Below, piece after piece: positions 1-54,174 of a stretch of DNA of 64,000 nucleotides. Numbering within the stretch: position 1 is the first letter of the stretch; every line of letters starts with the position of its first letter. Source of the stretch: Rhodosorus marinus CCMP1338 (lineage: Eukaryota; Plantae; Rhodophyta); assembly GCA_029953675.1 (NCBI GenBank), contig JAMWBK010000002.1, positions 744,001 to 808,000 on the forward strand. Reading direction: 5' to 3'. The notes beneath the pieces are model-generated. The model was not told where the DNA came from. It ran no database searches and worked only from the letters and a program-made list of their open reading frames with translations. A program made the position numbers and the translations under genes.

Positions 1-933
1 CATCAGATTTAGAACCGCGTCCTAACAAGGATGGTGACATGTGGCCGAGGGGCAATCATCTTGAAACCTCAAACTTATATTTAAATTAATATAGTGGTAG
101 AGAATGTTTACTTGTCAGGGGGGTCGTGAACCGATTCTACGCTCGACCTGGTGTTCTAAAAGTTCTCAAATCTGAGCAGCATTTCCGTTTGCTTTGGCTC
201 TTCCCAACCCTCTACCCAACATGATAACAAATGTATTTTAAAATAAAAAGGCTATATACAGAGAACTAACCCCTCAAGTAAATGAACTCGAACCTAATCT
301 AAGAAATCTTTCTAAATTTGTTAAGCATGACGACGGGGAGCACTAGCAATGGATTTTGGACTCCTTCGGGATAGTGACAGGTAAACTTGATAAAGGATTT
401 CTAATCGCATATTAAGTAAATATTTTGCGTTTTTCAGTGAGGGTTGAAAGAGCAGAAATGATTTATGTGTCCTATATGGTAGTAGAGTTTCGCATCAGCC
501 ATTGATGGACGGCTCCTGGGTAGACGGTCGGGGATAAGAATCTTGTCTGGTGTTGCTGGTGCAACAGAGGTTGTGGGGGAGGTGGGGACGGGCTGACGAT
601 GTTGACTGGTATTCGTGGGGAGAGGTTGAAAAAGTGTCTGTCTCTCTTTCTCTAGTGAGTCTAGAGAGTTTTTCGGGCCATTGAGGAATTGTAGGTGTTT
701 CTTTGTTGTAGCCTTTTTTGGGAAGGGCTATACCGGGCATTGCCGAGAGTCGCTGGGATGCGACGCGGTTGGGTTGAGCAGGACGGGATTTGGTTTATGG
801 GGCTGGTAGTTGGTGGAGTGAACTCGGCTGATTTAGGTACTTTTGTGGTTGACGAGAGACTTGCCTTGGCCAAGAACTTGGCGTTCTCTTTCGAAAGGAA
901 GGAGGCATTCGGATAGCACGGTCATAAACGGAG

Positions 934-3681
934 ATGGCGCCGGTGCCACTTGAGCCTAAAGTATCTGGCGAGGTGAGTTGATTTACTTAAGAACTGGGTG
1001 AAGCAAGTTCTACGGACGGATCACGAACTGCTGGCTGACAGATCGTCAATTCGTTGAACCAGAATTTCTCGCAGACACCTACTATTTCTAACTCATCCGG
1101 GTTTGAGGGACCAGAGAAGAGGCTGGAGATATATTTTCGACCTGTGGATGACCTGACAAAGGTCATCGAGTTGACGGAGGGGCTTCGAACAGTTTCCAGG
1201 AATGAATGGACGGACATATTGCGCGATGCTCAATGCAGCATCTTGTCCGCAAAGAGCAACGATTATTTTGACTCTTATCTTCTGTCAGAAAGCTCCCTCT
1301 TCATTTTTTCCACGAAGTTTATGATTAAGACGTGTGGAACAACTACTCTGTTGAAAGTGGTGAGTAGTTTTCAAGATTTGAGCAGCGCATTGCGTTCAGT
1401 GAAACTCAACAACGGCTTTGGTGCTTCCTCTACAACAGATCCCGAGAGTTAATGCGGTTACTGAAAGGTTGGGCCTGGAGATGGACTATATGCAATATTC
1501 CCGTGCAAGCTTTACGTTTCCGTAAGCTGGTTGCACAATTGTGTTCGAATTACTGGAAAATTCGCTAAATGAAAATTCTCGCTGATCAATGTCTTAGGAA
1601 CCAGCAGCTGCACCCGCACACGTCGTTCCAGTCAGAAGTGGACTACTTAAACCGCTTCTTCAAAGGTGAATCGTACGTTCTCGGAACTCCGGACGGGGCT
1701 ACCAAGTGGCATCTCTATATTGCCGGAGATTGTCGAATCCCAACCAACGATCAAGGTTTTGAAATTTTCATGTTCGATCTGGACGAGCGTTGCATGAGTC
1801 ACTTTTTCAACGTGGACGCGGACGGAACGAAAAGGTTTGGCAGTGCTCACGGGGCCACCACGTCAGAAAATAGTGGAATCACTCGTATCATGTCCGAGGG
1901 ATCGATTCTGGACGCGTACAACTTTGAACCATGTGGCTACTCCATGAACGGACTTGAGAATAGCAGCTATTATACGATTCACATAACGCCGGAACCTCAG
2001 TGCTCCTACGTTTCGTTCGAGTGCATTCTACCGCTGGATGACTTCACCAGCATCCTTGCAACTGTTCTGGACGTGTTTAAACCTGGAAAATTTAGTATTG
2101 CCCTGCATGCGGATATAACCGCCCCAGCCGCAGTGTACGGTCTGAAGGAGTTGTTGGGCAAGGAATCTCCATGGGGATACCAGGCTGTAGGTGACAGCAC
2201 TTTCCTCCGCATGAAGACGGTCACTGGCCACGCTGTGTCTGCAACTGTCTGCAGTTATGTCGCTGAGAGGACTCTTCCCGTACCGACACCGGTCTTGAAG
2301 TCACCAGGACTGCGAACGCCGCGTCCTTTGCTCGACTTTAACGGGGGTTTGAAAGAGGTACTTTTTTTCGGAGCAACGTTGGGTTTTGTTCCACGATCTA
2401 TGTTATTGATAGCTAATTTCATCTGTGCAGGTCGCGATGACGTACCGAGCAGAGTTGGCCACAAAAGGCACCAGCGTGGAGGACTTTGTTGCTGAACTTA
2501 TAACAAAAAGGACTGTAATCGAGCATCCTATCTCTTTCGTTGACCTCACAGCCGTCAGCGATCGAATCGATCTCGTTCTGCAGAAGATGACGAAGCACCA
2601 TGAGTTGCGCTGTTCAGTCCAGCCGAGCTCTAATCCTGCCATTCTGAGGTTGCTCGACCATGCCGGCTGTATTTTCGACGCAAGCTCGCTGTCAGACCTT
2701 CGGAGGCTTCGAAGAGCTGGCATTAATCCTAAGCATGCAGTTCTGACGAATCCGATCTGTGGTCTAAGCAACGTCTCGAAGGCGAAGGAACTCTTCCATA
2801 CCATGCGCATATTTGATGATATGGACGAACCAACGGTGAGGCGAATAGGGTCCTCTTTCCCCGGCGCTGCCTTTGAGCTCCGTCTAATGAACCCTTTGGA
2901 GGTCTCGGTCGAATCCGTGATAGACACAGCTGAAGCCACGATCATGAACGCGATCAATGCGGGGCTCGAGCCTAGTGGAATCAGTTTTCAACTCCCTGAG
3001 GAGAGGGGCTGCAAACCGGAGGAATTCAGGAGAGCATTGGAGATTGCACACCGGCTCGTCGCAGGGTTTTTGAGGCCGGAGTGTCCCATTCCCCCTCATA
3101 AGGCTAGAGGAATTCGCCGGTTGTGCGCTGGATCGTCATTCCCCGGAGCGTCGTCTTTCTCCTGTGAAGAGTTTTCGTCTGGCGTCCGAACTGCTCTTGA
3201 CCTCGCGGACGAGTTCTTCCCACCGAGCAGCGGCATAGCAGTTGGACTAGATCCCGGAAGCTTTCTTGTTTCCTCGTCGCACTCGCTTTTGCTATCCATT
3301 GTTGCTCGACGGGATGTCCGGGAGGGAGGATTCGCGACTTACTACGTGAACGACGGGGTGTACGGGTCCCTCGCACGGCTGAAGGATCCGGCGAAGCGCA
3401 CATCGCAGGTTGCAGACCCGGTCTGCTTTGTTGGCGGCTCAAAGCAACCCTGCAAAGTGATTGGTCCCAGTTGCGAGGATGCCGACGAGCTTTGGTCTGG
3501 AGAACTCCCCCGACTGCAAGTTGGAAATTGTCTTCTGTTCCCCCGCCTTGGAGCAACGGTAGATGCGGACCCGTCCAAACACAGCATCGTTTACTTCCTC
3601 GCTACAGGGGATGGCCAACCGCAGGCCCCGCCTTCCATGCGGCTGCACGGCCATGGAAACGTCGTGAGCAGCATCTGCTAG
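934..3681 (+). CDS. SAMDC: S-adenosylmethionine decarboxylase proenzyme fused to a C-terminal ornithine decarboxylase-like (pseudoenzyme) domain; 5 exons
   Basis: Exons 934-972, 1042-1359, 1439-1521, 1598-2357, 2431-3681; all introns GT..AG and phase-compatible. AdoMetDC motifs GFEGPEKRLE, YLLSE|SSLF (pyruvoyl cleavage site), KTCGTT, YSRASFTFP, FEPCGYSMNG, TIHITPE. C-terminal fold-type III motifs YYVNDGVYGS, GPSCED, FFPPSSGI. Confidence 0.9.
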
Positions 3682-5440: not shown

Positions 5441-6142
5441 GAAAACTGGTGCAGAGAACGGAGGCAGTGGGCAGGATCGGTCAAATGAAAGGTATGAAGA
5501 TTGCTTTTGCCTCTCTGTGAAAGAGTCTTTCTGCGGTGCTCAGCTTGGCTTCTTGGGATTTTGACGTATGTGCAGGGATCGGATAAGTTGCGGTGGTGGT
5601 GATGCTGGTTCGCCCCAAGTGGATGTGAAGGATCTCGCGGAGGATCGGCGTGAAGGGAATGGAGTAGGCCCCGGGCAGGTTGGTAATGGCCGCGACCGCA
5701 ACCGTGAGCGATATCACGACTTTGGTGGCCATCGGAGGCGGGATAGAGAGAGAGATAGGGGACGACAGAGTGATAAGAAAGGGTACAGAGATAGAGACAG
5801 AGAGAGGGATAGAGACCGAGGGCGGGACAGCGAAAGGGATCGAGAGCGGGACAAAGTCAGGGATAGGGATACAGGCAGAGGAAGGGACAGCGACAGAGGC
5901 AGAGATAGAGCATGGGATTCAGAGAGAGGCGACAAAAGGGACAGGTACAGGGAAAGGGAAAGGGAAAGGGAAAGGGACAGGGACAAGGACAGGGACAAGG
6001 GCAGGGACAAGGGTAGGGACAAGGACAGGGACAAGGACAGGGACAGGGACACACATAGAGACAAGGACAGGAACAGAGAAAGAGACCGAGACAGGGACCG
6101 AGACAGGGGCCGAGACAGGGACAGGGACAGGGATAGGAACTT

Positions 6143-6213
<71 letters not shown>

Positions 6214-6317
6214 CACATAGAGACAAGGACAGGGACTCAGAAAGAGGTCTAGACCGGCGAAGGGATAGAGGAAGCGAAAGAGGAAAGGACAGGGACACAG
6301 AAAGGGATAGATCCTGA
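5441..6317 (+). CDS. Arg/Asp-rich (RD) low-complexity exons, probably the C-terminal part of the G-patch protein
   Basis: Donor gtaatc at 5238 to acceptor ttccag at 5440 is phase-compatible, as is intron 5492-5575. The ORF to 6317 is (DR/ER)n. No independent in-frame ATG model fits as well. Confidence 0.55.
5690..6310 (+). repeat. Coding hexanucleotide microsatellite (GACAGG)n encoding Asp-Arg
   Basis: Degenerate GACAGG/GATAGA units with a perfect run of ~11 copies at 6144-6209. Confidence 0.95.
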
Positions 6318-36525: not shown

Positions 36526-39500
36526 ATGGTGAGGAAGCTAAATTTTGTGGCGCAAGCGCAGGCGCTAATGAACCCGTCTCTGGGTAAGGACGATCCCAGA
36601 ACTAGACGGTCCGGCTGAGAAAAGCCGAATCCGCCAGATCGCTAAAGGTCTGTTTTGTTGTGAACCTCATAGCTCCTGAAGAAAGACTCAAGCTGGTTAA
36701 CGAGGTTCGAGAAAACATCGAAGTTGGCCATAGTCCCGAATATGCGCTCTTTCTTCAGTCGATGTTCCCGGCGCTTCGACGAGTGCTCGAAGAGATAACA
36801 AAGCCGCAGTTCGTCGACGGCCCCGTTCAGAAGACCCGTCATCTTGTTCTTGACATCCTTCATCGGGTGCCATACAACGAGGTGCTTCTTTGCCAATTTT
36901 GATTCTGTTCTCGATCAGACGTACTTATGTATGTATGTTTTTGTTGTTTCTCAGGTTTTTCGTCAGTATGTTAGACCCCTAGGACAGCTCGCCATGAGCA
37001 TGCTACAAAAGGAGAACGAAGAGAATGCAGTCATATGTCTGCGAATAATTTTCGACCTATACAAGAGCTTTAAGCAGTCGTTGAAAGAACAGGTTCAGGC
37101 GTTTCTTACGTTTGTATGCACATTGTACAATAATTTTCCGCGTACAGTGGAGATCAACCTTGGGAACAGTTCGCAGGGGCATTCATCGGAGGGTAAAATA
37201 GCCAAGAGCACGGAGTCGTTCAAAGTCATGATTGAGTGTCCCATGATCGTGATGGTTTTACTGCAGCTGTACCAAGATCTGCTGATGCAGCCCAGCATCA
37301 AGATACTCCTCCCACTAATGATTAAGACGATTGAGATTAGAGCGCCGCATGGCGCTGCGAATAAGAAGGCTGTATACCAGGAGTTCATCGCAGCACAGGT
37401 GCGAAGAAGTCGTCCGGAGTTGTTTTGGTAGCTCCGTTGATACTGAAATGTACTGCTCTGCAGGTGAAAACTGTGTCGTTTCTGTCGTACTTGTTGAGAC
37501 ACTTTCGCGAGTTGATGGATCAGTACAAAGTGACGATACCGAAATCAATTGTCCAAGTGCTCGCCGCTTGTCCGGGCGATGCGGTGGCCAGCAGGAAGGA
37601 GCTATTAGTAGCAACCAAGCACATCCTCAACACTGAATTTCGACAAGTCAGCGCTTGCTTCAATTAATTTATTTAGGCCTCGAACTATGATACCAAAGCT
37701 AATCGCGGATCGCTTCGGTGTCGCAGGGTTTTTACGATCAAATCCAGATGTTTCTAGACGAGAAGGTGCTGATTGGTACTGGTCGAGCTGCGTACGAAAC
37801 ACTGAGACCACTGGCGTATTCGTTCTTGGCGGAGCTCGTACATCATGTACGGTCTGCTCTTAACCATAATCAGTTCAGCCTTATCATCTATATTTTTTCG
37901 ACGAATGTGCACGATCCATCGCTGAGCTACGTTATTAAGACGACCTCAGTCCGGCTTCTTGCAAACCTTGTGGAAAGCATCTATCACAAATCAGATATGA
38001 AAGATGAGGAAAAGCGACAGCTTCTAGTTCGGATTGTTGACACGATCGTCAACAAGTACTCGTCAATGACCGTCCAAGTAAGCTTGCTTGTAAACAGTTT
38101 CGAAATTTCCGTTCCTACTCAGCACGGAGCTGCTTTTGTTATTTGAAAGGTTCCGAGAATTCTTAAGCGAATCGAGGACAGCAAGAAGCCCGAAAGCAAA
38201 GACAGTAGGCTGCTGCCGCTCACTGAAGAACCGCTCACAGATCCGCTGAGAGAATTGAACGACGCAAAGCAGCTCCTAAAGGCGCTAACACTCGGCCTTA
38301 AAACGGTGAGTCTTAGTTTCTTTGTTTTCTGTTTTTATTCAAAAACTTTTTGTTTCTATGTATCTAACAAGACTTTTCGAACCCCAGGTTGTTTGGAGTG
38401 TCAACAACCTTACACTACCGACACAATCAGGAGTCCCTTCTCGACACAAAAAGGGGCTGCTCGAGGAAGAATGCGTCATGCTCGCGAAGATGATGACTTC
38501 TGTACCTGAGTGCTTCAAGCTGTACGGTACGACTAGAACTTGACTGGAAGCTGCAAGGTAGGGGCGGACTAACCTAGAATGGAGTTTTACGGATTGATTT
38601 TTTACCGCTGTTCCAGGCTATCGAAGCGGTGATGAAGAAACAAAAGCGCGAGAGGAGAAAGAAATTTTGGACAATTTCGCCCTCGTCTTCACCTATATCG
38701 AACCGAGAAACTTCCAAGATATCTTCGGGTCCAGAATGCAACAGCTATATGAATACATGGTCTACAACGCAGCTGCGTTAACGATTCCTCAGCGTTTCCT
38801 CGCATATCCCAACATTTCGAAGTTTTTCGCGGATATTTTGTTGAACTTCCTAGTCAAGAAACTGCCCAACCTATCGGTCTCTGAAAAGACTGAAGCCGAG
38901 CAAAAGACCATTTCGCGACTTTTCAAAATGGTGTTTGCTTCTGGTAAGCATACTCCCACGATTTGAGCATCCTCTCCTGTTCTCAGTACAACCCTTCCTC
39001 GTCTGTTCACCAGTGCAAATCATGACGGCGGAAAATGAACCCGTTTTAAAGCTGCATCTTTCTTCTATTGTTCACGGGTGCATTCGACATTCGACGTCGT
39101 CAGAAGATCCAATTAATTGGCTGAATCTGCTTAGAGCATTATTTAAGAGTTTGAGAGGAGGAAAATACGATCTCTCGTGCAAGGAGTTTGTTCCGCTTCT
39201 AGTACCTGTCCTGGAAGCCTTGACAAAATTGCTTAGGAGCCCGCATGGGGTAGCGAACAGGTGCGTGTTTGTCGTAGTGCAACCCATTGACAGTCCTGGT
39301 CATGATTCTCATAAACCTTTGTCCACGATCTTAGGGATCTGCTCATCGAGCTGATTCTTATCGTGCCGGCGAGGCCGAGCACGATCTTGCCACACCTGGC
39401 GAAGTATCACATAAAGGCGATAATAGCTGCTCTTCAAGCTGGGAATGATCTCGTCGTGTCCCTGGGCTTGACAACTTTGGAGTTCTGGATCGACAACCTT

Positions 39501-42500
39501 CAACCAGAGTTTCTCGCGTCAGCCCTGGAAAGCGTTGAGAAGGGTTTAATGACAGAGTTGTGGCGACTTTTGAAGCCTGGTGTCGGACAGTACAGGCAGC
39601 CCGTACTCCGAATATTGGGAAAACTGGGTGGCAGGAATCGGAGGTACATGATCTTAGACATTGGTTGCTTCATGGAAGTGGCAATGGTGCACGTGAGGTT
39701 AAGCTTTTGCGCGTATCGTTTCTGGAACTGTCGCTTTTCTCATAGGATTGCGTCCGAATTGCATGCCGTGAAGTGCAGGGAAATACCGGAGAGTAGAATT
39801 GGTTTGTTGCTTTCTTGGACTAATGGGACTGATTTTAAAGTGGACGTCGACACGGTTGCCGAGACTTGCGTGTCGATTATATTGGATGGTGTAGAGGACG
39901 ATCGGAGGAAGTTCGCTGTGCTCGAGAAGCACGCAGCGTTTGAAATACTCCAAGTACTTGCATCCTTGTTCGTTGGGGGAGGAACTGAAGGCAGAGCTCT
40001 TCGTCGGCCATCAAGTCAGAAGGTAGGTAACTGGTTCGCACCAAACGCTGAGCAGAAAAGTCGATTAACAATGATTTGCGCAACCATGCGTGAACACTCT
40101 AGGGTAATGGAACACTGGTAAAGGTGGCTTCCCGAGACAGGCGTAGTGTAGACCATGGGCTTGTGAAGAGTGTTTTCCACGCTTTGCTCGTTGCTTGTGG
40201 CGATGGAGAAGTGGAATACGATGAAGAAGCAAAGACGTTTGTGAAAAACTTGTGCACACACTTTGCTTCTCTTCACGTTTTGCAACTAGCCGGTTCCAGT
40301 CGGCCAGCGGTAGGTGTAACTGTGCAACATCCAATTGCTTCCTGCTCATATTAGCGGTTTGCTTTTAAGCTGCTCATGTTGGCGGTTTGCTTTGAGCTGA
40401 GTCAGTCATTATCTTGGCTCTGCCAATTCGCATAGGCCTTTTTGCCAATAGCCACTGTTTCGGGAAGCTTCTCCGATAGCTCTGACCTAGATCCGGATAT
40501 GTTCCTGGATGCGTTGGTCGCGAGTGCTTGTTCGGAGGCTAGGGAGCACGCCGCAGAAGGCATAGCAAATTTGACAGTATTCGTGGAAGCGATGCTCGAC
40601 GAGGGCTCCAGTGCTTCTTGCCTGCCAGGAATTGGGGCTCTTCTGGGTCGACTTAGTCACTGCTGTTATCAAGCTGATTGGCGTGCCAGGTGGGCTGGAG
40701 TAGTAGGTATGGAAAGCCCACGATATCGTAAATTTTTTCTTGGCTTTGCTTCCTCACGGGTACGATTGTGAAGCTATTCACCTCACCTCCCAATGCTGAT
40801 TCTCATCTTCTGAACTGTAGGCATCAGAAAACTCCTGCCGCTGTGCCCGAAAGAGTTGTTCGCCCTCCGAAATGGGATTTGGGGCGAAGCCAACCTCATA
40901 AGGTCCTTGTTAAACGTCATGAAATATTCATATGCAGAGTATCTTGGACCGATCACCCCCGAAGCTAAAGAAGCCGTAAAAGATGTTTTGCGGAACAAGC
41001 GACAGTACGAAGGGGACGAGCGGACCCGCTTGAGGAGGGAATTAGCGAATTCCTTAGCCGTTGAGGTAGTAATTCACCAGTTATCAATAGTCAACGACAT
41101 CGTGACTGAAACAAGTCCTTTTCTTCATTAAGCTGTGCTCTGAGTCCGAGGACGTTAGGGAGTGTGCTGAGTCCGGTTTGCAGTTGTTAGCTGAGCTTGA
41201 GAATCAGCGAACGAGTGCTGTTCTTCAGCTTGTCAAAGACCAAATTCTGCGTTCGTTTACGAAGCGACCGCTTCGAACGTTGCCCTGGTTGAATCAAATA
41301 GGTCAAGTGAGTGCGTTGACGTTCTGTGTCCGACATCGACCTATGTTCGCCAACGAGATGGTTAGCGTGAACCCTACCACTCCCCGTGCAATTTTCACCG
41401 GTGCTCTTGAGATTTTGGAGGACTCGACGGTCGCGAATCTGGTAGAAGTTGAGGATGCCAAGGTTAACTACCTTGTGGACAAGAATTTCGTGGCCCTTAA
41501 TACGGTTAGCTTGCTTCTGCCTTTACGGCTGAAGTGCGTTGAACTTCTTTGTGAAGTGACGGCGTCCTTCCCGAAGCTTCGATTGTCGGACTCGCAGAAC
41601 GAAGAGCTGCACCAAAAAATGCTCACTGTTTTCTTCCATTCGCTGCAATCCCGAAGAGAGCCTATTGTGAAAGTTGCAAAACAGGCGCTGAAAAACGTTA
41701 TTGAGCACGATAACCTCCAGAAGAACTTGTTGGCCACCAACCTAAGGCCGATTCTCTTCAAGCTGGGCGATCCAAGCAAGCTAAATGTACAGTATCTTCA
41801 GTGCCTGGCGGGGGTTCTGGAGACTTTATCTCATTGGTTTAACGTGATGTTGGGAGACAAGCTCTTGCAGCACTTGAAGTACTGGACAGATGCGGCTGCT
41901 GCTGTAAATAGAAGGCAAGCTCCCGATCCGTTGGTAGCAGCTGCTATCCTGGACCTTCTCCACCTGCTCCCTCCGCAAGCGAACACGTTTCTGGAGAAGA
42001 TGGTGCACAGCGTGATTAAGCTCGAGCAGTATGTGTGATGGAGAACGCTCCCGGACTTTCGTTAGAGTATTCGTTTTGGTTTGAGTGTTTGACCTGGCTC
42101 ACTCTTATATTTCATTCTTTCCCTAGGCTCTTGGACAACGCTAGACCTGGTGCGGCACATTTAGGTTTGAAAGGAAGGGATGCTGCCAGCACGAGCCCGT
42201 ACCGGGAACCCCTGCTGAAGTTCTGCAACGTCCATGCAGAAGAAGCATGTCAGTTTTTCCTGCAGAGGGAGTCAGGGCAAATCCGGCATCTGTTTTTGTG
42301 TCTCATATCCGCGGATGATGCTGGACCTTTGAGACTCAAGCTTGAGCAAAAGAAGAAGGATATCATTCAGCTGATGCGACCACGAAGTGAAGGACCGTCC
42401 AAGTCATCAATTTATGGCTTGAAGATCATTGAAGCTATTTCGAGGGAAAATCCCGAGTGGCTCGGGAACAATAGAGACGTGTTCGACTGCCTGCTTCTTA

Positions 42501-45500
42501 CGTGGAGATCGCAGGAGAGACAGGAAAGACTGAAAAGGGAGGAGATACTGCCCTTGGAGCAGTTAAGAGAGTCGGAGATGTTGGCTCAATGCTTTCTACG
42601 ATACTGTCGACGACACCATGAGGAAGTGTCTGTTTTGTTCACAATCCTGAGCGTATTTTCTATTCGATCCCGGAGCGATTTCACCTTCATTAAGGACTAT
42701 TACATGGACTACATCCCAGAGCACTATTCGGTTCAGCACAGAAAGGAAATCGTCGTGTGTTTCTTAGGACTGTATATGGACTCAACTGTACCGCATGAAG
42801 AGAAGGTATGTGTGCATTCCGGACCGGCCAGCTACGCTCTTATCTTCGCAGATATCTTAGTTGTACCACTTTTCCGTTTCTCTATGTAGGTGCACGCATT
42901 GCAGTTTCTTATTATTCCTATGCTGGAGAAGTCTTTCAAGGCAGGCGAGACCAGTTCAATATTGGACGAGGAAATCATCGGGAGGATTGTTCGGGACTTG
43001 CTTGTGTTTCGCGGTCTTAATGCGACTGATGAGTATCTCAGCGCGGAACTTCTCCAGCTCTCGATTTTGGTCATGCAGTATATGCCCAACGAGTGCCAAC
43101 AGCATAGGAAGGACTTGATCAGTCTCGGCTGGAATCATTTGAAGAAGGACAATATAACCGCAAGGAATTGGGCCTTTTTGAGTGTGTCAAGGTGAGCTCT
43201 CAGAAGCTTTGTCCGTTGAGCGGAAGCGGGGCTCGTGTGAATACGGAATACTGACTTGTGGTTGGGACCGTGGACGCCAGGTTCTTTATTGCGTACACTG
43301 CTCCTGACAAGGTCATTTTGCAAGTCTATTATGCTCTTCTCCGCGCTTTCCAGCCCGAAGGCAGAGCTCGCGTTAGACAGGCTCTTGACGTCCTTGTCCC
43401 GGCACTCCCTCATAAGCTGCCACATGATCGAAAGGAGAACAAGTACCCAATTTGGATCAGATACACAATGAGAGTGATGGTTGAGGAAGGACATTCGATT
43501 CAGAACCTTATTCACATCTATTATCTTATCGTACGGCATGGGGACCTCTTCTATGGTTCGAGAGCACAATTTGTTCCTCAGATGCTTTCAAAGTTAAACC
43601 ATCTGACGTCGACGAACTTCCAGTCACCGGAAAACCGACGGCTCGCCTTGGATATGACGAAACTCATTCTCGACTGGGAGGAGAAGCAAATCGATCAATC
43701 GGCAACGGGAACAGCTCAAGGATCAGATGGCGCTGTGCTGGGCAGCAAACGAGACCGAGATGAAGACGAGGCGAAAGCAGCTGACCCAGCTGCAAAGCTA
43801 AGACGAACGGATGCGAACGAACACCCGTCAACAGCTTCGACTTCCGACCAAGAAGCGAAAGGGAAAGCGCAGATTACGAAACCTTCAAGGCAGGCTTGTG
43901 GGACCCGTGAGGTAGAAGCTGCGGCAGCAAAAGAAAGCACCGCACAGGTGAATTCTGAAAGCAAGCCCAAGCCAGCCGAGCTTGCTCCTGCCAAAACGGA
44001 AAGAGGTGCGGAGGCGAATCCCTCCACTGCTGAGGAGGAGTTTAAGCTCTCGGAATTTATGGTGGACAAGCTGTTGTCGTCTCTGATTTCGGTGATGCTG
44101 CTCAAGTCGGATTTGAGGGAAAGGAATCTAATCGCGGAAAGATGCAAGGTGCTGATACAGAGGGCTTTGCGTTTGTGGCCAAAGACTCCAGTAAGCTTGA
44201 ATAGTCGGGTTGAAAAGTTGCTGGCGCCGACACCAGAGGCTCAAATTAAGGGTAAACTGCTGAAGGCAGAACCAACGGGACAGACTCAAGGATCTAGGGG
44301 TGTCCCACAACCTGGTGCTGGAAGAGGAGCCCAAGTTCAAAACGTTATGAACGTCCCTTCCCGAGTGGCGACGACCACGACAACACCGAGAGTGGGAATG
44401 CAACAAAAGACTAGTCCTGACACATCGAGATCAGCGCAGTCGGAGGCTAAATCTGAAGCTCATTCGCGTAATGACCTTCAAGAGAAGCGCCTAGCATTGA
44501 AAATCGTACTCGACGTTAGCCACGTGTTGATTGACCATCAAGCGGCGCTGTTTGTCAAAGTGAATGCGGACGCGATAAAGGCAATGGTCAAAGCTGCAAT
44601 GATCAGTGGAGTAGTCCCACTGGTCGATTCATCGTGCTCGCTTCTCGAGAGGGTTTTGGAGGCGTGCCCGCCCGTAAAGGCAGACCTCTCTGAGGCAATT
44701 TGCAAGGACATCGCATCGAATCTTAGCAAGTGCTTGAAAGGCGCGGACAAGGTTGGGGTGTACGCGAGTTTGAAAATCCTTACCATTTTCCAACAAGCTT
44801 ATCCACGCGTTGTTGGATTGCACCTAAGCGAGCTGGAGAACATACATAGCACTCTTTCTGATGGTGTGAGGCCCCTCCCTAGAAGTCAAACTGAGTCGCA
44901 TCAAGTCGCTGCCGCTAAGAGTCGAACAACAGAAAAGGAGAAGCTCGAGGCGAAACTGGATTGCGACTGCCTCTGCATGTGTATGTCGCTGCTTAGCTCC
45001 TGCTTGCAGACGCACGCCGAATCGAAGAAGAAGTTCTTCAAGAACCTTTTCAACGTTATCGAGAAGTGCAACAATGTTGCGGTTTTAATCGAGGTTGTGA
45101 AGCTCATCAGCAAGTGGGTGGAGATACGGCCTGGCAGCGAAGGCGATTATTTTTCTGTCAAAGAAAAGTCCCAACTTTTGTTGAGGACGAGCGTTTTCGA
45201 GAGGCTCCCGGCTCCAGAAGCAGGTGAGCTCCAAACTGCGTGCTTGATGATCGTCTATCGGATATTTGGAGGTGAGGGTGAGGAGAAGAAGAGGACAGAG
45301 TTGATGAGCAAACTGGAGCGCTATTTCATGCTCGGGCTTCGAAGCTCGGATCTCGATACTCGACGAAAGTTCCTGGCGATGTTTGGTGAAACGGTGCGGG
45401 CGAGCCCGACGAATCACATTGAATACATAATTTTGCACCAGGAATGGCAGCCACTGCGGGATTCCTTTTGGATCGAGCAAGCAACAGAATTGCTTCTGCT

Positions 45501-48500
45501 GGAAGTAAGCCAGGGGTCGCTCAAACTGGAAACCGGCTTTCCGTCGTTCCCGGCAGGCGCACAGTCGGAATCGGAGAAGTTGATGACAACGATGCTGTTG
45601 GAATCGAGTAAGCCGGCCGACCTGAACGCGATGTTAATGAAATCGCTGCGGAGCTTAGTACAGGTCAATCCGAGCATTGCGCATCAAACTTGGATTCAAC
45701 TATTTCCTAGAGCATGGGAAAACTTGGAGGTGAGGACCCAGAACCTCTTGTTTCTCCAAGCAGACATCCCTAAGTTTTCTTCTTGGTATTTCCGAACAGG
45801 AACCGGTGTTGTCCAATTTGGAGAGGGGGCTTTGCCAGCTGCTTGCCAAGGAGTATCACGGAAGTCAAATGAATCGTGACCGAAACGTTATCCAGTCCTG
45901 GCTTGAGGGCTTGATTCGATTGGACCGTCCCCCAGTGCTGGATGCGAATCTTATTGCTCACCTAGCCCAGCGGTTCAACTCGTGGCATTGTGGTTGTCAA
46001 TTGCTAGAGAAACAATTGGCAGGGAATCCTTCCGACACTGACCGGGAGAATCTACAAGATGCTCTCTGCTCCCTACTTACGCAGTTGAATGAAGGTGACC
46101 TGGTAGCGGGTATTTGGAAGCAAAGAGCCAACGTTCCGGAAACGAGCTCTGGTTTGATATCCCAACTGACAGGGGATCATTCAGCCGCACAGGATTACTT
46201 CCTGGAGGTAAGGTCCATATAGTGCTGAAAGTGTCATTCCTATTTCTTAGCGGAATTTGTGCACTTGCATATTGTTGTCAGGCCATGGGAAAGGCGCAGA
46301 ATGGGCGACTTGCAAAGGATGCAAAGAAGGCCGAAGTCTTTTTGTGGGAAGAGCGATGGATCGAAAGCGCGAAGCAAATGTCTCAGTGGGATATGCTAAC
46401 CGAGTTTTCGCGCTCAGTCACTCATGCAAGCTTATTGCACGAGTGCTTATGGCGCATTCCAGAGTGGGCAGCACTTCGGGAGCTGACTTTCAAACATACG
46501 ATTGAAGACGATACGCAGCTCAGAATTTATCAAGCTTACTATCACTTGCAAGAAAACAAAGGGGATTATGCTGACCAATCCAACTCGAACAAGATTGATT
46601 ACGTAGAGCAGTCCATCGCGAGAGGGATGCAGAAGGCGTTGTATCATTGGACTTCACTTCCGCAAGGCAGTGGAATTGATCCGTTCATTCCATCGTTGGT
46701 GAAGTTTCAGCAACTCGTTGAGCTTCATGAAAGCAGTAAGATTCTAAGCGAGATGAACACCTATCTACAACCAGAAGCAAACTCGGAAAAGCCGATTGAC
46801 AACATTCGAAACTACTTTGCGATGTGGCGGGAGCGGTAATGAACGAACGCCGATGGCTTTAATCTTTGTCTTACTGCAGCCTGTTCTAAGCACTCTTGAA
46901 CTCTCTCCTACGCGCCATAGGATGCCCAACACGTGGGATGAGCCGCTCGTGTGGAGCGACTTGCTCACATGGCGCCATCATGTTTACACCGCTATAACCA
47001 ACTCAATTCAGGCCCTAAAGGATAGCGGGCTGCGGGACTATAATCAGTCGATCATGAGTTTAAGCGTCAATGAGACCGCGCATAGTGTGAACTCCTTCGC
47101 CCGGATGTGCCGTAAGCAGAACCTGCTGGATTGTTGCATCAATGCCCTGCAAGGGTTTTACCCGTATCGGAGCATGCACTACGACGACCTCTTGGTGAAG
47201 ACAAAGCAGCAAGTGAAGGCGTACTTACATGGTGAGTTCTTTCCTTACGAGCGGGCATTCAGAACCAATGCTTACGGAGGATTCTACTTGCAGGCCCCCA
47301 AAACGTGGATAACCCGTTGCAAACTGGACTGAATTTGATCAGCACGAGCGCAGTCGATCGTCTTAGTAAGCGACAGACTGCTCAGTTGTTTGCTCTGAAG
47401 GGTGACCTGTGCCGCGCGTTGGGAAATAGCGAGGAGGCAAACCAAGCTTACGCAACCGCTACCACCACCGCGCCGGAGCAGGCATCTGGCTGGTTTGCTT
47501 GGGCTCAGCATTGTGATCGCGTATATGTGGAGAATAGAAGCGACTTGTCATGGGCAGAGGCTGCCTCTGTGTGCTACTTTCAATCTGTCCGCTTTGGGTC
47601 TAGGAGGGGAAGGTATTGTCTAGCACAGTCGAATTGCTTTGCCTAGGAATTTTTGTAGCCGCAGCGCTGAGGCGATTCTCTCTTTATGCAATAGGCGGCA
47701 CTTGTCTCGAGTTTTGAACTTCCTATCGCAAGGTGCTGATGTGCGCCGATCAAAGAAGGGCCCTGACAGAGGAAAGGACGCTTCTGTTGGGGTTCCGTCC
47801 TTTGCAAACCAAACCCCACAGCAGACTGCCGAAGATCCTAAGGACATTGAGAAGGGTGCAGATGGAGGAGGAATATTTGTCGTATTTGAACGTTTCCAGG
47901 ATGTACTACCACCTTGGGTATGGTTGCCATGGATACAACAGTTGATTCCCATGCTTGCGAGAGGAGAAGCCCTGCAAGCACGAGCCATACTTATCCGCGT
48001 CGCTCAGCAATATCCGCAGGCAATTTTTTACCAGCTCAGGGCATTTTCGGAGGAATACAAGCCTGCAGGGCGCGCGACGCCCGGGTTTACCGCTGAAGCT
48101 TTGAATGCGCCGAGGGCGAACACTCAGTACTTGCTCCCCAGTGCATCGCAATCAAAACGAGGGGAGAGCCTGCAAACTGCCCAGCAGGATGCAGCAAAGT
48201 CGAAGGAGAATGCGGCGAAAAGCTTACAAACGCAGCAGGCAGCTGTGCGGGCCGTCAAGAGTGCCGAGAATATGAAGGGGGCTGCAGCGGCAAAGGCGCA
48301 GAAGCAGTTAGAGGAGTTAGCCAAAAAGAGACAGGAATTGCAAAGAAAAGCGCAAGAGGATCAAAAGAAGCTCCAGGAGCTTACCAGACAGGAAGGAAAG
48401 TTGGCAGAGTCAGCGGCTTCTATGAACGTTGCCGCCAAGACTCCGTTTGATCATGCAGACGTTATTCTGGCACAGCTCGTGAGGCACAATTCTCAAACCC

Positions 48501-51500
48501 TCTACTTTGAGCTAGAGGCAATCTGCCAGCACATGGCGGAAAGGTTGAAGCCGGTCGCGGAAGAAACACTCCTGGGTCTCATGAACGCGTTACTGCATAG
48601 ATGCTATCATTTGCAAGCGCCAGGAAAGGAGGTCGGGCAACCGTTGAGGACTGCCCTGGAGGAGGTTTCAAGAATGTACTTTGGCACTCATACGCAGAGG
48701 TCGACAGCCGGAGCTCCACACAACGTTCAGGGACTGCGGACCGGCAGTCCCCAAGCGCAGGCAGCAGGGCACCCACCTTCTGCTAAAATCCCTCGAACTG
48801 ATGTAGCCAATGGGCGGCCAATGGAACCTATTCAGCATGAGTCCAAGGTGGAGGCGACCTTGGTGCCCTCAGCCCGAGAGCAACCCGGAACCGCGCAGCA
48901 GCCCGGGCAGAATCTCCCGCCTGGTTCGTCGACCACTGGGGCAAATTCGACCTCTGCACAGCCGGCTGCGGGAATGCATAGACCTCAGCTTATGCGGACA
49001 ACTCAAGCAATAACGCAAGGCGTTGGGCTCGCGGCTCCTGTTCTGGCAGTGGAAGCAGCCCAGAAATCTGCACAGGCTCAGCGGAGATTCCCGGCAACAC
49101 AACCAACGCAGACAACAAAGGCTCTGCAAGGAACGCAGGTGCCGCAAGCGATGCGCGGACCGCAGGCAATGCAGTCGAACGTGCCCATGGGAGCACAAGC
49201 TCAACAAGCTCAACAAGCTCAACAAGCTCAACAAGCTCAACAAGCTCAACAAGCCGAACAACTTCAACAAGTTCAACAAGCTCAACAAGTTCAACAAGCT
49301 CAACAAGCTCAACGGGCTCAACAAGCTCAACAAGCTCAACAAGCTCAACAAGCGCAACAAGCTCAACAAGCCCGGCAGCCACCGCCAACGCAGCCAACAC
49401 AGCCAACACAGCCAACGCAGCCAACGCAGCCGACGCAACCAACGCAGCCGACGCAGCCAACGCAGCCGACGCAGCCAACGCAGCCAACGCAGCCAACGCA
49501 GCCAACGCAGCCAACGCAGCCAACGCAGCCAACGCAGCCAACGCAGCCAACGCAGCCAACGCAGCCAACGCAGCCAACGCAGCCAACGCAGCCAACGCAG
49601 CCAACGCAGCCAACGCAGCCAACGCAGCCAACGCAGCCAACGCAGCCAACGCAGCCAACGCAGCCAACGCAGCCAACGCAGCCAACGCAGCCAACGCAAC
49701 CGTTGCAGCCACCGCAGCCAACGCAACCGTTGCAGCCACCGCAACCAATGCAGCCACTGCCACCAACGCAGCCACCGCAGCCAGCGTCACCAACGCAGCC
49801 AACGCAAGCAGCGTCACCAGCGCAGCCAACGCAAGCAACGCAGCCAGCGCAGCCAGCGCAGCCAGCGCAGCCAACGCAGGAATCGCAGGTACCAGAGCCA
49901 TGGCAGCCAACGCAACCACAGCCAGCACCACCGGTGCCAGAACATTCGCAGTCAGAGGGCGGGCAAGAACAAGAGACAGCACAGATACAGAACGCGAAGG
50001 AAGCACCGCAGCCATCGGCACCAACGGCACCAACACCAGCAACGCCGTCACGGCAGCCAGCGCCAACCCAGCCGACGCCTGCAACAGCAACACCTGCTAG
50101 AGCAACGCCTGCACCAGCAACGCCTGCACCAGCAACGCCTGCACCAGCAACGCCTGCACCAGCAACGCCTGCACCAGCAACGCCTGCGACAGCAACGCCT
50201 GCGACAGCAACGCCTGCAACCGCAACGCCTGCAACCGCAACGCCTGCAACCGCAACGCCTGCAACCGCAACGCCTGCAACCGCAACGCCTGCAACCGCAA
50301 CGCCTGCAACCGCAACTCCTGCAACGGCAACGCCTGCAACGGCAACGCCCGCAACGGCAACGCCTGCAACGGCAACGCCCGCAACGGCAACGCCTGCAAC
50401 AGCAACGCCTGCAACAGCAACGCCTGCAACAGCAACGCCTGCAACAGCAACGCCTGCAACCGCAACGCCTGCAACCGCAACGCCTGCAACCGCAACGCCT
50501 GCAACCGCAACGCCTGCAACCGCAACACCGGCAACAGCAACGCCTGCAACAGCACCGCCTACAACAGCAACGCCGTCACAGCAGCCAGCACCAACCCAGC
50601 CGACGCCTGCAACCGCAACGCCCGCACTAGCAACGCCTGCAACCGCAACGCCTGCAACCGCAACGCCTGCAACCGCAACGCCTGCAACCGCAACGCCTGC
50701 AACAGCAACGCCTGCAACCGCAACGCCTGCAACCGCAACGCCTGCAACCGCAACGCCTGCAACCGCAACGCCTGCAACCGCAACGCCTGCAACCGCAACG
50801 CCTGCAACCGCAACACCGGCAACCGCAACGCCCGCGACCTCAACACCTGCAACCGCCATACCTGCAACCGCAACGCCCGCGACCGCAACACCTGCAACCG
50901 CAACGCCCGCGACCGCAACACCTGCAACCGCCATACCTGCAACAGCAACGCCTGCAACAGCAACGCCTGCAACAGCAACGCCTGCAACAGCAGCAACAGT
51001 AACGCCTGCAACGACAACGCCAGAAACGGCAACGCCTGCAACAGCAACGCTTGCAACAGCAACGCCTGCAACAGCAACGCTTGCAACAGCAACGCCTGCA
51101 ACGACAACGCGTACAACAGCAACACCTGCAACAACAACGTCTGTAACAACAACGCCTGCAACAACAACGTCTGTAACAACAACGCCTGCAACAACAACGC
51201 CTGCAACAGCAACGCCTGCATTCCAGCCACAGCATCCAATACCGAGTCATGAGCAAAACGAGCCCAACGCCGGAGGAAGGAGCGTCCCGGTAACGAAGGC
51301 TTCTGAGATGGGAGTCGCGCCAGCTCGTGCAGCGACAGGGACTCAACTTGCGGAGCAGAATGTCTCGCGTCTTACACCCTACCAGAAGGAGGGAGCGGAG
51401 CCTGAGGGGCTAGGGCAAACAGTCGGCAGAAGAAATCTGCCAGCACATCGAAGCGCATCGTTACAAGGACACGGAGCACAATTGCAAGGGCAGTCTGGTC

Positions 51501-53257
51501 TTTCTCAGCAGAGTCCGCAAGGAACTGCTAGGCCTGGGATTTCTGTTGGATTGCCTCATCGAAGATCTGCCGATCCTGCCTCAGTAGGTCAGACAGGAGC
51601 GAAACGTGGTGCACCAGCTTCATGGGCCCCTGCGGGTTCGAGTGGAAGCGGAGCATCGCACGCTGCATCACCGACCCCGCACAAGATAGCGCCGTCCATC
51701 GCGGATCTCAAATTTGCTTTTGAGGCTGAGCTTGCCCCACAAACTGCCAAGGACTTTCCGAGCACGATTGAGCCATTCATAGAACGGCTCATAAAGTGGA
51801 AGGGTATATTCCAGAAAAGGGTGGATTCTATGCCAGATGTTCAGCGGCTTGAGCTTCTATGGAGGATTTTTGCGGATACTCATAACGACGTAGAAGTGTT
51901 TGGCCAGTACTTGGACATCGATGACGAACCAAACTTGGATAACCATGTCAGGATCGAGCGCTTTTCGGCGGATGTGCAGGTCGTTCGAAGGCACGCAGGA
52001 GCGTCGCGGCGAGTGAAAATTTTTGGAAGCAATGGGATAGTCAAGAGTTTTGTGCTGGAGACTAGCGTGAACGCAGCGACACAGAGATCGGAAGAACGTG
52101 CTACTCAGCTCTGCAGGCTAATAAATCGCCTTCTCGACGGAGACTGCCAGACAAGGAAGAGGAGACTGTCTATGTCTGTGCCCGTGCTTGTGCCCACAAG
52201 TCAAAATACACGGCTTGTGGGAGATGATCCATCCGCAGTTTCTCTTTCGGAAGCGTTGGAGTGGTACATGGAGCGGAAAGGCGTCACCATGGATGAACCC
52301 TTGCTTATGTTCAGGAGTGCTTTTGCCCAGATATTTGGCCCTAAGAAAAGTCAACTCCCTGCAGGAGCTCAACCATCTAGGGAAACCTACCGCGCAGCTC
52401 GCCTGGATGCATTCAAAAAGGTCTGCGATGATGTCGTCCCCGACTACTGCTTAAGTTCATGGGTTGAGAAGAGCATACCGAACGCGAACTCTTTGTTTAT
52501 GTTGAAGAAGCAAGTTGCACAGGGCATCGGCGTCAGCGGAATTCTTTGCTACGCGTTGGCTATTGGATATAGGTAATCTAGCTCGTTTCGATCATTATCT
52601 ATTGATTTGTTCACTTATCGGATCTTTTGTTTCGACATGCTGTCACTACAGGAGGCCGCAGCACATTATGCTCTCGAGGAGAACAGGGAAAATCACTCAG
52701 TCGTTCATAAGAGCAAACGTTTCGCAGGGCATCGTTCAATTTGATGAATCCGTGTACGTACCGTTCAGACTAACCCGGAACATTCACAAACTACTCGGCA
52801 ACTTCCTCGTGGACGGCGTCATGTCACTATCTATGGTGGCCGTCATCGAAGCAATTCTTCGGAACAAATCATTGTTCTCCCACTATCTTCACGCTGTGCT
52901 GAGGAACGAGCTGATGCCTCGGGCACCTGGTCGTGGTGACAGAAACGTTGCAATTGGTAAGCCGAACTTGGAGCATTCACCTGTTAGAACAATTTTGTCG
53001 TTTATGTTTGTAGTCTTATTAGTTTGCTACGTTGAACCGATCTAGGGCATAACGATTTGGACGCGGTAGAAGACAACTTGGAAAAGAGCGTGCGATATGT
53101 CTTCAGAAGGTTGGAAGGATCGACGGACACCAATGCCGCTTCCGGTTCCACGCCCGCCCCGGTGAGCGCGATCTCTCGCGTAGAGGAATTACTGGCTTCT
53201 GCTCAGAACCAGCAGGCCCAAAGTCAAATGGAACCTAGCTGGCACGCTTGGTTCTAA
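36526..53257 (+). CDS. TRRAP: TRRAP/Tra1 (PIKK-family pseudokinase scaffold of SAGA/NuA4), multi-exon
   Basis: N-terminus RLKLVNEVRENIE...KPQF...RHLVLDILHR, ENEENAVICLRIIFDL, VKTVSFLSY, LGLTTLEFWIDNL, ILGKLGGRNRR. FAT region WIESAKQMSQWDML and WLPWIQQL. PI3K-like domain VPFRLTRNI and FATC end MEPSWHAWF*. Confidence 0.95.
49193..49369 (+). repeat. Coding 9-bp repeat (GCTCAACAA)n encoding (AQQ)n
   Basis: Directly visible tandem units within the long TRRAP exon. Confidence 0.95.
49385..49699 (+). repeat. Coding 9-bp repeat (CCAACGCAG)n encoding ~35 x PTQ
   Basis: 315 bp of near-perfect units; degenerate continuation to ~49880. Confidence 0.95.
50080..51220 (+). repeat. Coding 15-bp repeat (GCAACGCCTGCAACC/A)n encoding (ATPAT)n
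   Basis: About 1.1 kb of pentapeptide units with subtype blocks (APATP, ATATP, TTSVT). Confidence 0.95.
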
Positions 53258-54174
53258 CACGCGTCAGTCTTTTCATTCCTGTAAACGGTCTAGAAGGCTC
53301 CGCCGGTGGGGCTTCCTTTCTCAGAGCTACGTCTTAAGCTCTTGGATAAGCCAGGAGCCGAAAGAGACGATTTCTTTCTTTTCTCTCCTCTCCTTTGCGT
53401 CAGGTTTGAAATGTCCTTGAACCGAATAAAAATACCTTGAAAGCCAAAAACAGTAAGACTTTGAGAGCATCCCCAAGCTTTGTATAAAGTTAGGAGCAAG
53501 ATTCCAGCGGAAGGGGGATCAACATTGCAGCCCTTAGCGAACCGCGAAGTTGAAGAAGACCAGTCACTGCGGTTAGACAAGCGCTGACCTAACTAACCTA
53601 GAACATTATCTATGAAGGCTGTCCAAACAGAACAATAAGGACTTGGGAGCCTTCACGAAAGCCCGATTCTTGCAGGCTCAAGAGGGAGTCTAGACGTCTG
53701 TCCAAGTCGTTAAGCCTAGGCATCCCTTCGGCTTGACTCGGTTGCATTTCTCACTATCGAAGTTGTCGGCTTCTGATCCTAGTTAGGCTAATGCGAACTG
53801 AGCGCGGCTTTCAAGGCGCGCCTAAAGACAAAACTCAAGCCTGTATTCAGGTCTGCCACTTCGTACAAGCGAGTTGCAAAGTTTAGCAGACAAATGCGTC
53901 GTCTAGACGTCGGCCGAGTTTCGAAGTTTGGGGCTTTCTGCGGTTGCGTAAGTTTGCGTTGAACGGGTTGCTGTTCTCTTTCTCTGCTGTACGTTCGTAC
54001 AAAGACAAGAGCCAAAGCTTGCAAGGGGGTTGGTGGCGGGGGTGCTCAGGCTGGAAGGATGGATGTCTGTCTTCCTCGAAGGTCTCCTCGGAAGTAGAAA
54101 GTACTATGGGTGCCGTTGTGGCTTTGGTCTGGTGTATGGACTTGTTTTGAAGTGTGAAAGGCGATGTTGAGAGG

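Follow-up and report, generated by a model that had tools for sequence, protein, structure and literature searches.

What is a decarboxylase fold kept for once its catalytic residues are gone? A single gene near the start of a 64,000-nucleotide window of the Rhodosorus marinus CCMP1338 genome raises this question (GenBank assembly GCA_029953675.1, contig JAMWBK010000002.1, positions 744,001 to 808,000 of the forward strand; the window is this whole stretch, and coordinates below count from its first letter). R. marinus, a unicellular red alga, belongs to the class Stylonematophyceae. The gene, a single five-exon unit at 934-3681 on the + strand, encodes an 809-aa protein that combines, in one polypeptide and in this order, an N-terminal S-adenosylmethionine decarboxylase (AdoMetDC), which produces the aminopropyl donor used for polyamines, a disordered linker and a C-terminal ornithine decarboxylase (ODC) fold. 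Judged from its residues, the ODC-like half is a pseudoenzyme domain, in which the catalytic motifs are absent and the fold and open frame are under purifying selection. On balance we favour, as rather probable, the reading that it is the pseudoenzyme domain of an ancient bifunctional AdoMetDC/ODC, retained as a non-catalytic partner of AdoMetDC, that is, as a scaffold or regulator.

Gene structure and the two decarboxylase halves

The product is identical at 809/809 amino acids to GenBank KAJ8907449.1 of Rhodosorus marinus, deposited as "hypothetical protein NDN08_007560"; the database names so far attached to the protein are "hypothetical protein" and "adenosylmethionine decarboxylase". Its introns are 73-90 nt long and all are bounded by GT..AG. 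The same five blocks are recovered when the window is aligned with L001, a 2,862-nt transcript contig from a 93%-identical relative (JGI sample 3300017118), so the AdoMetDC and ODC-like parts share one spliced mRNA and one reading frame. The features of the gene are as follows.

934-972 (+): exon 1, start codon and residues 1-13; GT at 973; matched by KAJ8907449.1 and L001
1063-1359 (+): exon 2, N-terminal part of AdoMetDC with FEGPEK, the LSE/SS self-cleavage site and KTCGTT; Pfam SAM_decarbox, E 2e-35
1439-1521 (+): exon 3, AdoMetDC; positions 684-768 of the L001 transcript
1598-2357 (+): exon 4, C-terminal part of AdoMetDC (CGYSMNG, TIHITPE) and linker; Pfam SAM_decarbox, E 1.3e-50
2277-2327 (+): disordered Pro-rich linker, residues 367-383 of 809; pLDDT below 50 in the full-length AlphaFold2 model
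2358-2430 (+): intron 4, 73 nt, coinciding exactly with the domain boundary; GT..AG, removed in L001
2431-3681 (+): exon 5, ODC-fold pseudoenzyme domain, residues 394-809 and stop codon; Pfam, PDB, AlphaFold2, Foldseek and dN/dS (ratio of non-synonymous to synonymous substitution rates)

Exon 5 begins at position 2431, and the stop codon ends at 3681; the chance that 416 codons stay open is about (61/64)^416, roughly 2e-9. The acceptor of exon 2 at 1062/1063 is backed by both KAJ8907449.1 and the L001 transcript, which rule out an acceptor for intron 1 at 1041/1042 (an 816-aa model) and fit the 809-aa product.

Intron 4 is kept in some assembled transcripts of a related Rhodosorus strain (MMETSP/JGI isoforms P0266/P0269 and P0263). 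In P0266/P0269 its retention leaves a protein of 438 aa that contains AdoMetDC only and ends in a 45-aa read-through tail, and P0263 corresponds to the ODC-like domain alone, as a separate downstream open reading frame (ORF) of an intron-4-retaining transcript. The read-through frame is likewise open in the window (ORF 1569-2495). These transcripts could be pre-mRNA that had yet to be spliced, or the fused and unfused forms could be alternatives under regulation.

The AdoMetDC half matches human AdoMetDC structures (E 8e-58) and looks like a working enzyme: by comparison with the human protein it keeps F7, E8 and E11 (FEGPEK), C82 (KTCGTT), S229 (CGYSMNG), and H243 and E247 (TIHITPE), and the E67-S68 self-cleavage site is present as LSESS. 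Among the best 120 homologues of the full-length query there was no second Rhodosorus AdoMetDC.

The ODC-like half presents the opposite picture. Its residues were called from a MAFFT L-INS-i alignment of human ODC residues 62-393 with 25-70 homologues, and the codons were located by translation; numbering below is that of human ODC.

2608-2622 (+): R-C-S-V-Q of strand beta-1, with a clade-specific R (2608-2610) and Q in place of K69; alignment
2620-2622 (+): Q (CAG, in CSVQPS) for the Schiff-base lysine K69; alignment and translation
2875-2883 (+): E-L-R, a clade-specific Glu at position 152 and the retained R154; alignment
2989-2991 (+): Q for H197, which in ODC stacks on the ring of pyridoxal 5'-phosphate (PLP); alignment
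3130-3138 (+): G-S-S for the G235-G236-G237 phosphate loop; alignment
3250-3261 (+): D-P-G-S for E274-P-G-R277 (E274 to D, R277 to S); alignment
3472-3501 (+): C-E-D-A-D-E-L-W-S-G, the C360 loop, with C360 and D364 kept, D361 changed to E, then the clade-invariant W and G; alignment
3556-3558 (+): T for Y389, a PLP phosphate ligand; alignment

The Schiff-base lysine, the ring-stacking H197 and all three phosphate ligands (G237, R277 and Y389) are thus jointly lost, and the K169 ('KFG') segment is gone through a 7-residue deletion. In another register (HMMER against human ODC, and a three-sequence MAFFT alignment) K69 pairs with the R of ELRCS; lysine is absent from ELRCSVQPSS, so K69 is lost in either register. 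The domain retains D88 (FDASS), R154 and YYVNDGVYGS, E94 has become D, and the equivalent of the substrate-binding D332 reads P or D depending on a one-column alignment shift; in all, it keeps 4-5 of 15 ODC signature residues. Judged from these residues, the domain cannot bind PLP or form a Schiff base by the known ODC mechanism. Since it would fail the defining chemistry of ODC, the protein is best classed neither as an ODC nor as a genuinely bifunctional enzyme.

The fold, on the other hand, is predicted to be intact. Pfam recognises the domain weakly (PF02784, 32.2 bits against a gathering threshold of 23.4; PF00278, 36.3 bits against 23), and its best phmmer matches in the PDB are AZIN1 (3btn, E 2.9e-18) and human ODC (E 2e-17). 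AlphaFold2 gives a confident model (mean pLDDT 89.7, predicted TM-score [pTM] 0.87), a prediction helped by the true ODCs in its input alignment. The best Foldseek match to this model is human ODC (9b8n, E 5e-28, TM-score 0.73-0.75 over about 405 columns); human, mouse and Trypanosoma brucei ODC and AZIN1 all match it at E of about 1e-25 to 5e-28, TM-scores of 0.7-0.75 and 20-22% identity. The two-domain ODC fold, a TIM-barrel plus a beta-sheet, is therefore modelled as retained.

These results bear out the by-eye reading of the initial annotation on each residue it named. The K69 to Q, H197 to Q and Y389 to T replacements, the loss of R277 and the absence of KFG are all reproduced by alignment and translation, the AGSS it read for the GGG phosphate loop contains the G-S-S at 3130-3138, and the segments it considered retained (FDASS, YYVNDGVYGS and C360) are found in the alignment. 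The structural comparison with ODC and AZIN1 that it suggested likewise yields a confident model with matches to both.

A complete ODC is encoded elsewhere in the same species. An exhaustive search and cluster look-up recovered KAJ8904739.1, a stand-alone R. marinus ODC of 456 aa encoded on another contig, of 3.19 Mb. Its sequence identity is 49% with human ODC and only about 30% with the dead domain, and it carries all 21 catalytic and interface residues that were checked, with K294 conservatively R. By its residues, ornithine decarboxylation is the task of this separate canonical gene. The top-scoring stand-alone ODC match, P0001, derives from Tara Oceans metatranscriptomes and not from Rhodosorus, and was dropped.

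The red-algal clade and its constraint

A word-index search with the ODC-like domain alone returned only 4 distant ODCs; the family surfaced with the full-length query and the exhaustive search. Among the matches to the full-length query were 68 fusion proteins of at least 700 aa, which were sorted by 15 tabulated ODC signature positions. Twenty-eight green-lineage sequences, among them named entries from Chlorokybus, Mesotaenium, Cymbomonas and Coccomyxa, have 15/15 and look active, and the fusions of the glaucophyte Cyanophora (P0015) and of Diphylleia (P0012) are near-complete at 13/15. About 32 sequences are degenerate, with 2-9 of the 15 residues, and their named members are all red algae, from six classes: Galdieria, Porphyridium, Rhodochaete, Pyropia, Gracilaria and Rhodosorus. 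The degenerate sequences group as a single clade, with all six named red-algal genera in it, when a neighbour-joining tree is built from the AdoMetDC half. The fused architecture is thus shared by Diphylleia and by algae of the red, green and glaucophyte lineages. This distribution points to an old AdoMetDC-ODC fusion that is Archaeplastida-wide, of which the dead ODC domain would be the red-algal form and green algae would keep the active one, and the dead domain has apparently been kept in all red algae. In full-text literature searches no paper turned up that describes red-algal AdoMetDC as carrying a dead ODC domain, which is apparently undescribed.

Degenerate fusions are also seen beyond the red-algal clade. 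P0073 and P0090 have S at K69 (6/15 each), P0057 (2/15) and P0071 (3/15) have D there, P0020 retains K69 yet reaches only 6/15, and P0056 has 9/15; the ODC half may have lost activity more than once across the fusions. Two high-scoring animal matches, P0127 (mayfly) and P0128 (frog), carry the full catalytic set, are ordinarily ODC-like and are unrelated to the dead clade.

In most members of the degenerate clade R or H stands in place of K69 and D or E in place of H197, and none of them has the K169 segment. The 32 sequences have also gained residues without a counterpart in active ODCs: R65 (94%), E152 (91%; L or V in active fusions), and L98, W367 and G370 (100% each), every one of which is present in the window protein. 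R65 and E152 lie in barrel strands, and W367 and G370 beside the C360 interface loop. The clade keeps G357, P358, C360 (84%), D361 (88%), D364 (97%) and the YYxNDGxYG motif, and the ODC-like frame is open in each red-algal lineage sampled. A parallel inspection of the AdoMetDC half for clade-specific residues that might hint at an interdomain interface gave only a few conservative changes, which are uninterpretable.

The ODC-like domain is under purifying selection and is not drifting. Its Nei-Gojobori dN/dS against L001 is 0.145 (416 codons, dS 0.22), compared with 0.092 for the AdoMetDC core. At the equivalent of K69 the window has Q, the 93%-identical relative R, and P0125, P0006, P0126 and P0007 have K, R or E; on its genomic contig P0125 directly follows AdoMetDC exons and so has the same architecture. 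That this position varies among close relatives at so low a dN/dS indicates that the position is unconstrained and the domain constrained. The selection on the fold that the initial annotation had read from the uninterrupted frame is thus upheld by the dN/dS, and the contrary case it had raised, of orthologs keeping Lys69 and this copy drifting neutrally, does not describe what is found, namely a variable K69 site and a dN/dS of 0.145. The separate active ODC that it had looked for is matched by KAJ8904739.1 with its full residue set.

The balance of conservation between the two halves has shifted. In active fusions the median identity is 54% for the ODC half versus 46% for the AdoMetDC half (ratio 1.19); in the degenerate clade it is 26% versus 42% (ratio 0.63). 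The lower ratio suggests that constraint on the ODC-like half has been changed, not abolished.

The 5' leader and the rest of the window

A conserved upstream open reading frame (uORF) precedes the gene.

758-916 (+): conserved 52-codon uORF (MRRGWVEQDG...ERKEAFG), stopping 18 nt before the main ATG

Its peptide is 51/52 identical to that of the L001 uORF (173-331), the codon changes being 4 synonymous and 1 non-synonymous, and nucleotide identity to L001 is 97% in the uORF versus about 84% in the flanking leader. It looks like the conserved-peptide uORFs that give polyamine-responsive AdoMetDC translation in plants and animals; the penultimate proline usual in such uORFs is lacking from the 758-916 peptide. 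Red-algal AdoMetDC uORFs are mentioned in a passage of PMC2811004.

Elsewhere in the window, a 249-aa ORF at 5568-6317 (+) consists almost wholly of Arg-Asp/Arg-Glu dipeptide repeats (RDRDRERD...), of which the long overlapping ORFs in other frames and on the opposite strand are a side-effect. A large Tra1/TRRAP-like gene lies at about 39360-52580 (+), with Tra1 HEAT central and ring regions and a weak PI3/PI4-kinase match at the end of a 1645-aa ORF (47639-52576). Inside this ORF, a low-complexity block of about 2 kb (49195-51220) is made of 9-nt and 15-nt tandem repeats that translate to (AQQ)n, (PTQ) about 59 times and (TPATA) about 77 times; it explains the anomaly at 48-52 kb in GC content (0.59-0.60) and AT-skew (+0.4). 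A 544-aa ORF at 54154-55788 (+) encodes a PPR protein (PPR_2, E 7.7e-24). An Rfam scan of the window gave no matches.

Role of the domain and comparison with known systems

Based on the above data, we propose that the AdoMetDC half depends non-catalytically on the dead ODC domain, which would be why the domain is kept. An ODC-type dimerisation scaffold would pair two AdoMetDC domains through the flexible linker and could tune AdoMetDC processing, stability or activity, with the free canonical ODC carrying out ornithine decarboxylation. By analogy, the domain probably acts in the dimerisation or regulation of AdoMetDC, possibly by pairing with free ODC. In Plasmodium, the AdoMetDC/ODC complex assembles via dimerisation of its ODC part, which also modulates the activity of AdoMetDC (PMC3253432); human spermine synthase requires a dead domain derived from AdoMetDC in order to dimerise (PMC12803844 and PMC2811004).

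Several points weigh against this proposal. In the full-length AlphaFold2 model both halves are confident and the linker is disordered, and the pTM of 0.55, with no confident interdomain packing, does not support a fixed intramolecular allosteric contact, although a monomer model is blind to dimer effects. The Rhodosorus domain has lost parts of the ODC dimer interface (K169 deleted, Y331 changed, FNGF motif absent), so ODC-type dimerisation is not assured; AZIN1, without similar dimer contacts, is monomeric. Finally, the dN/dS comes from one sequence pair, the window and the L001 transcript, and the red-algal clade from a simple neighbour-joining tree in which most clade members are metagenome or SRA assemblies.

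How the active site of ODC is built suggests another use for the domain. ODC active sites form across the dimer, each from one barrel and the C360 loop of the other subunit, and K69A/C360A heterodimers regain activity. In the red-algal clade the PLP residues of the barrel are lost, but the C360 loop, with its invariant W367 and G370, is the best-conserved segment, and a canonical ODC is encoded in the same genome. The dead domain might then heterodimerise with free ODC in a prozyme-like manner, donating its C360/D(E)361/D364 loop in trans and coupling the synthesis of putrescine and decarboxylated S-adenosylmethionine (dcAdoMet). We regard this as unlikely, if deserving of serious thought: AZIN1, which does not pair with ODC, likewise keeps its GPSCD loop, which may mean that loop retention is purely structural, and Rhodosorus has D361 changed to E besides lacking K169, Y331 and FNGF. 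Only tentatively, then, would we extend the idea across the red algae, with the dead domain as a 'prozyme for ODC' that pairs with the free ODC by way of its C360/D364/W367/G370 loop, forms a half-active heterodimer tethered to AdoMetDC and couples putrescine and dcAdoMet stoichiometrically; if true, dead-paralogue control would have arisen independently for a third time in polyamine synthesis.

The former active site offers further readings. Putrescine activates AdoMetDC in animals, and many clade members share a recurrent acidic set in the PLP pocket (E88 81%, D/E197 75%, E236 34%) that could suit a polyamine, so that a remodelled pocket might bind ornithine, putrescine or polyamine and signal to AdoMetDC. 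Such a sensor appears improbable. Pocket residues vary across the clade, position 69 being Q, R, K, E or H and differing even between two Rhodosorus strains, and this lack of conservation makes a conserved ligand sensor less likely; the Rhodosorus pocket itself has Q69, Q197, S236 and S237 in place of the acidic set, and the absence of a fixed predicted contact with AdoMetDC tells against signalling. The domain might also still be an enzyme whose chemistry has changed and relies on a lysine at a new site or on a different cofactor; C360 and R154 are retained, and some pseudoenzymes have relocated catalytic residues (review PMC10211241). We hold this to be very improbable, given that no lysine is conserved in the clade and that G237, R277, Y389, H197 and the Schiff-base lysine are lost together. 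That the domain is a neutral relic, decaying slowly while attached to an essential enzyme, is scarcely credible and already disfavoured: relative to AdoMetDC it does evolve about twice as fast as active ODC domains, but its low dN/dS, the open frame in each red-algal lineage sampled, the 100%-invariant clade residues and the confident fold all speak against it. A non-catalytic partner of AdoMetDC thus remains the reading we prefer.

The closest parallels in architecture are the AdoMetDC/ODC of Plasmodium falciparum and the green-algal fusions, which share the order AdoMetDC, linker and ODC fold; the red-algal protein groups with the Archaeplastida fusions. In Plasmodium and green algae both halves are active, whereas here the ODC half is without K69, H197, the Gly loop, R277 and Y389. 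Green et al. (2011, Mol Microbiol) reportedly noted an AdoMetDC-ODC fusion in Micromonas. The Plasmodium arrangement, called 'unique' in a passage of PMC3253432, would then look like one branch of an old and widespread fusion, fully active in the green lineage and with one activity lost in the red. The series of active fusions, dead fusions and unfused enzymes provides a system for asking of what use the ODC half is to AdoMetDC. In metabolic reconstructions, automatic annotation may score the red-algal protein as an ODC, for which the separate ODC gene would be the right assignment.

Polyamine synthesis is the textbook case of regulation by dead homologues, with antizyme inhibitor, prozyme, the DHS paralogue and the N-terminal domain of spermine synthase as examples, and a tethered dead ODC conserved in six of the seven red-algal classes sampled would be a further and apparently very old one. 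The animal antizyme inhibitors AZIN1/2 are likewise dead ODC homologues, with an ODC fold that lacks PLP binding and activity, and R277 and Y389 are lost in both them and the red-algal domain. AZIN, however, is free-standing, a metazoan paralogue with K69 still in place that acts by sequestering antizyme, whereas the red-algal domain is fused to AdoMetDC. There is no orthology between the two: the ODC-like domain groups with the red-algal fusions, and AZIN scores alongside ODC in the PDB. Antizyme is not known in algae, and antizyme binding by the red-algal domain is unlikely. Prozyme, the dead AdoMetDC paralogue of trypanosomatids, and the dead DHS paralogue show that dead homologues are kept as partners of active polyamine enzymes (PMC5201418 and PMC3663545); prozyme, however, is an AdoMetDC paralogue on a separate polypeptide, and the red-algal module is an ODC fold, covalently fused. 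A further parallel is the N-terminal domain of human spermine synthase, a fused dead decarboxylase domain needed for dimerisation and partner activity, although it has the fold of a bacterial class 1b AdoMetDC and its partner is an aminopropyltransferase, unlike the pairing of ODC fold and AdoMetDC in red algae. By analogy, then, the red-algal domain would work like AZIN and prozyme without being a member of either family.

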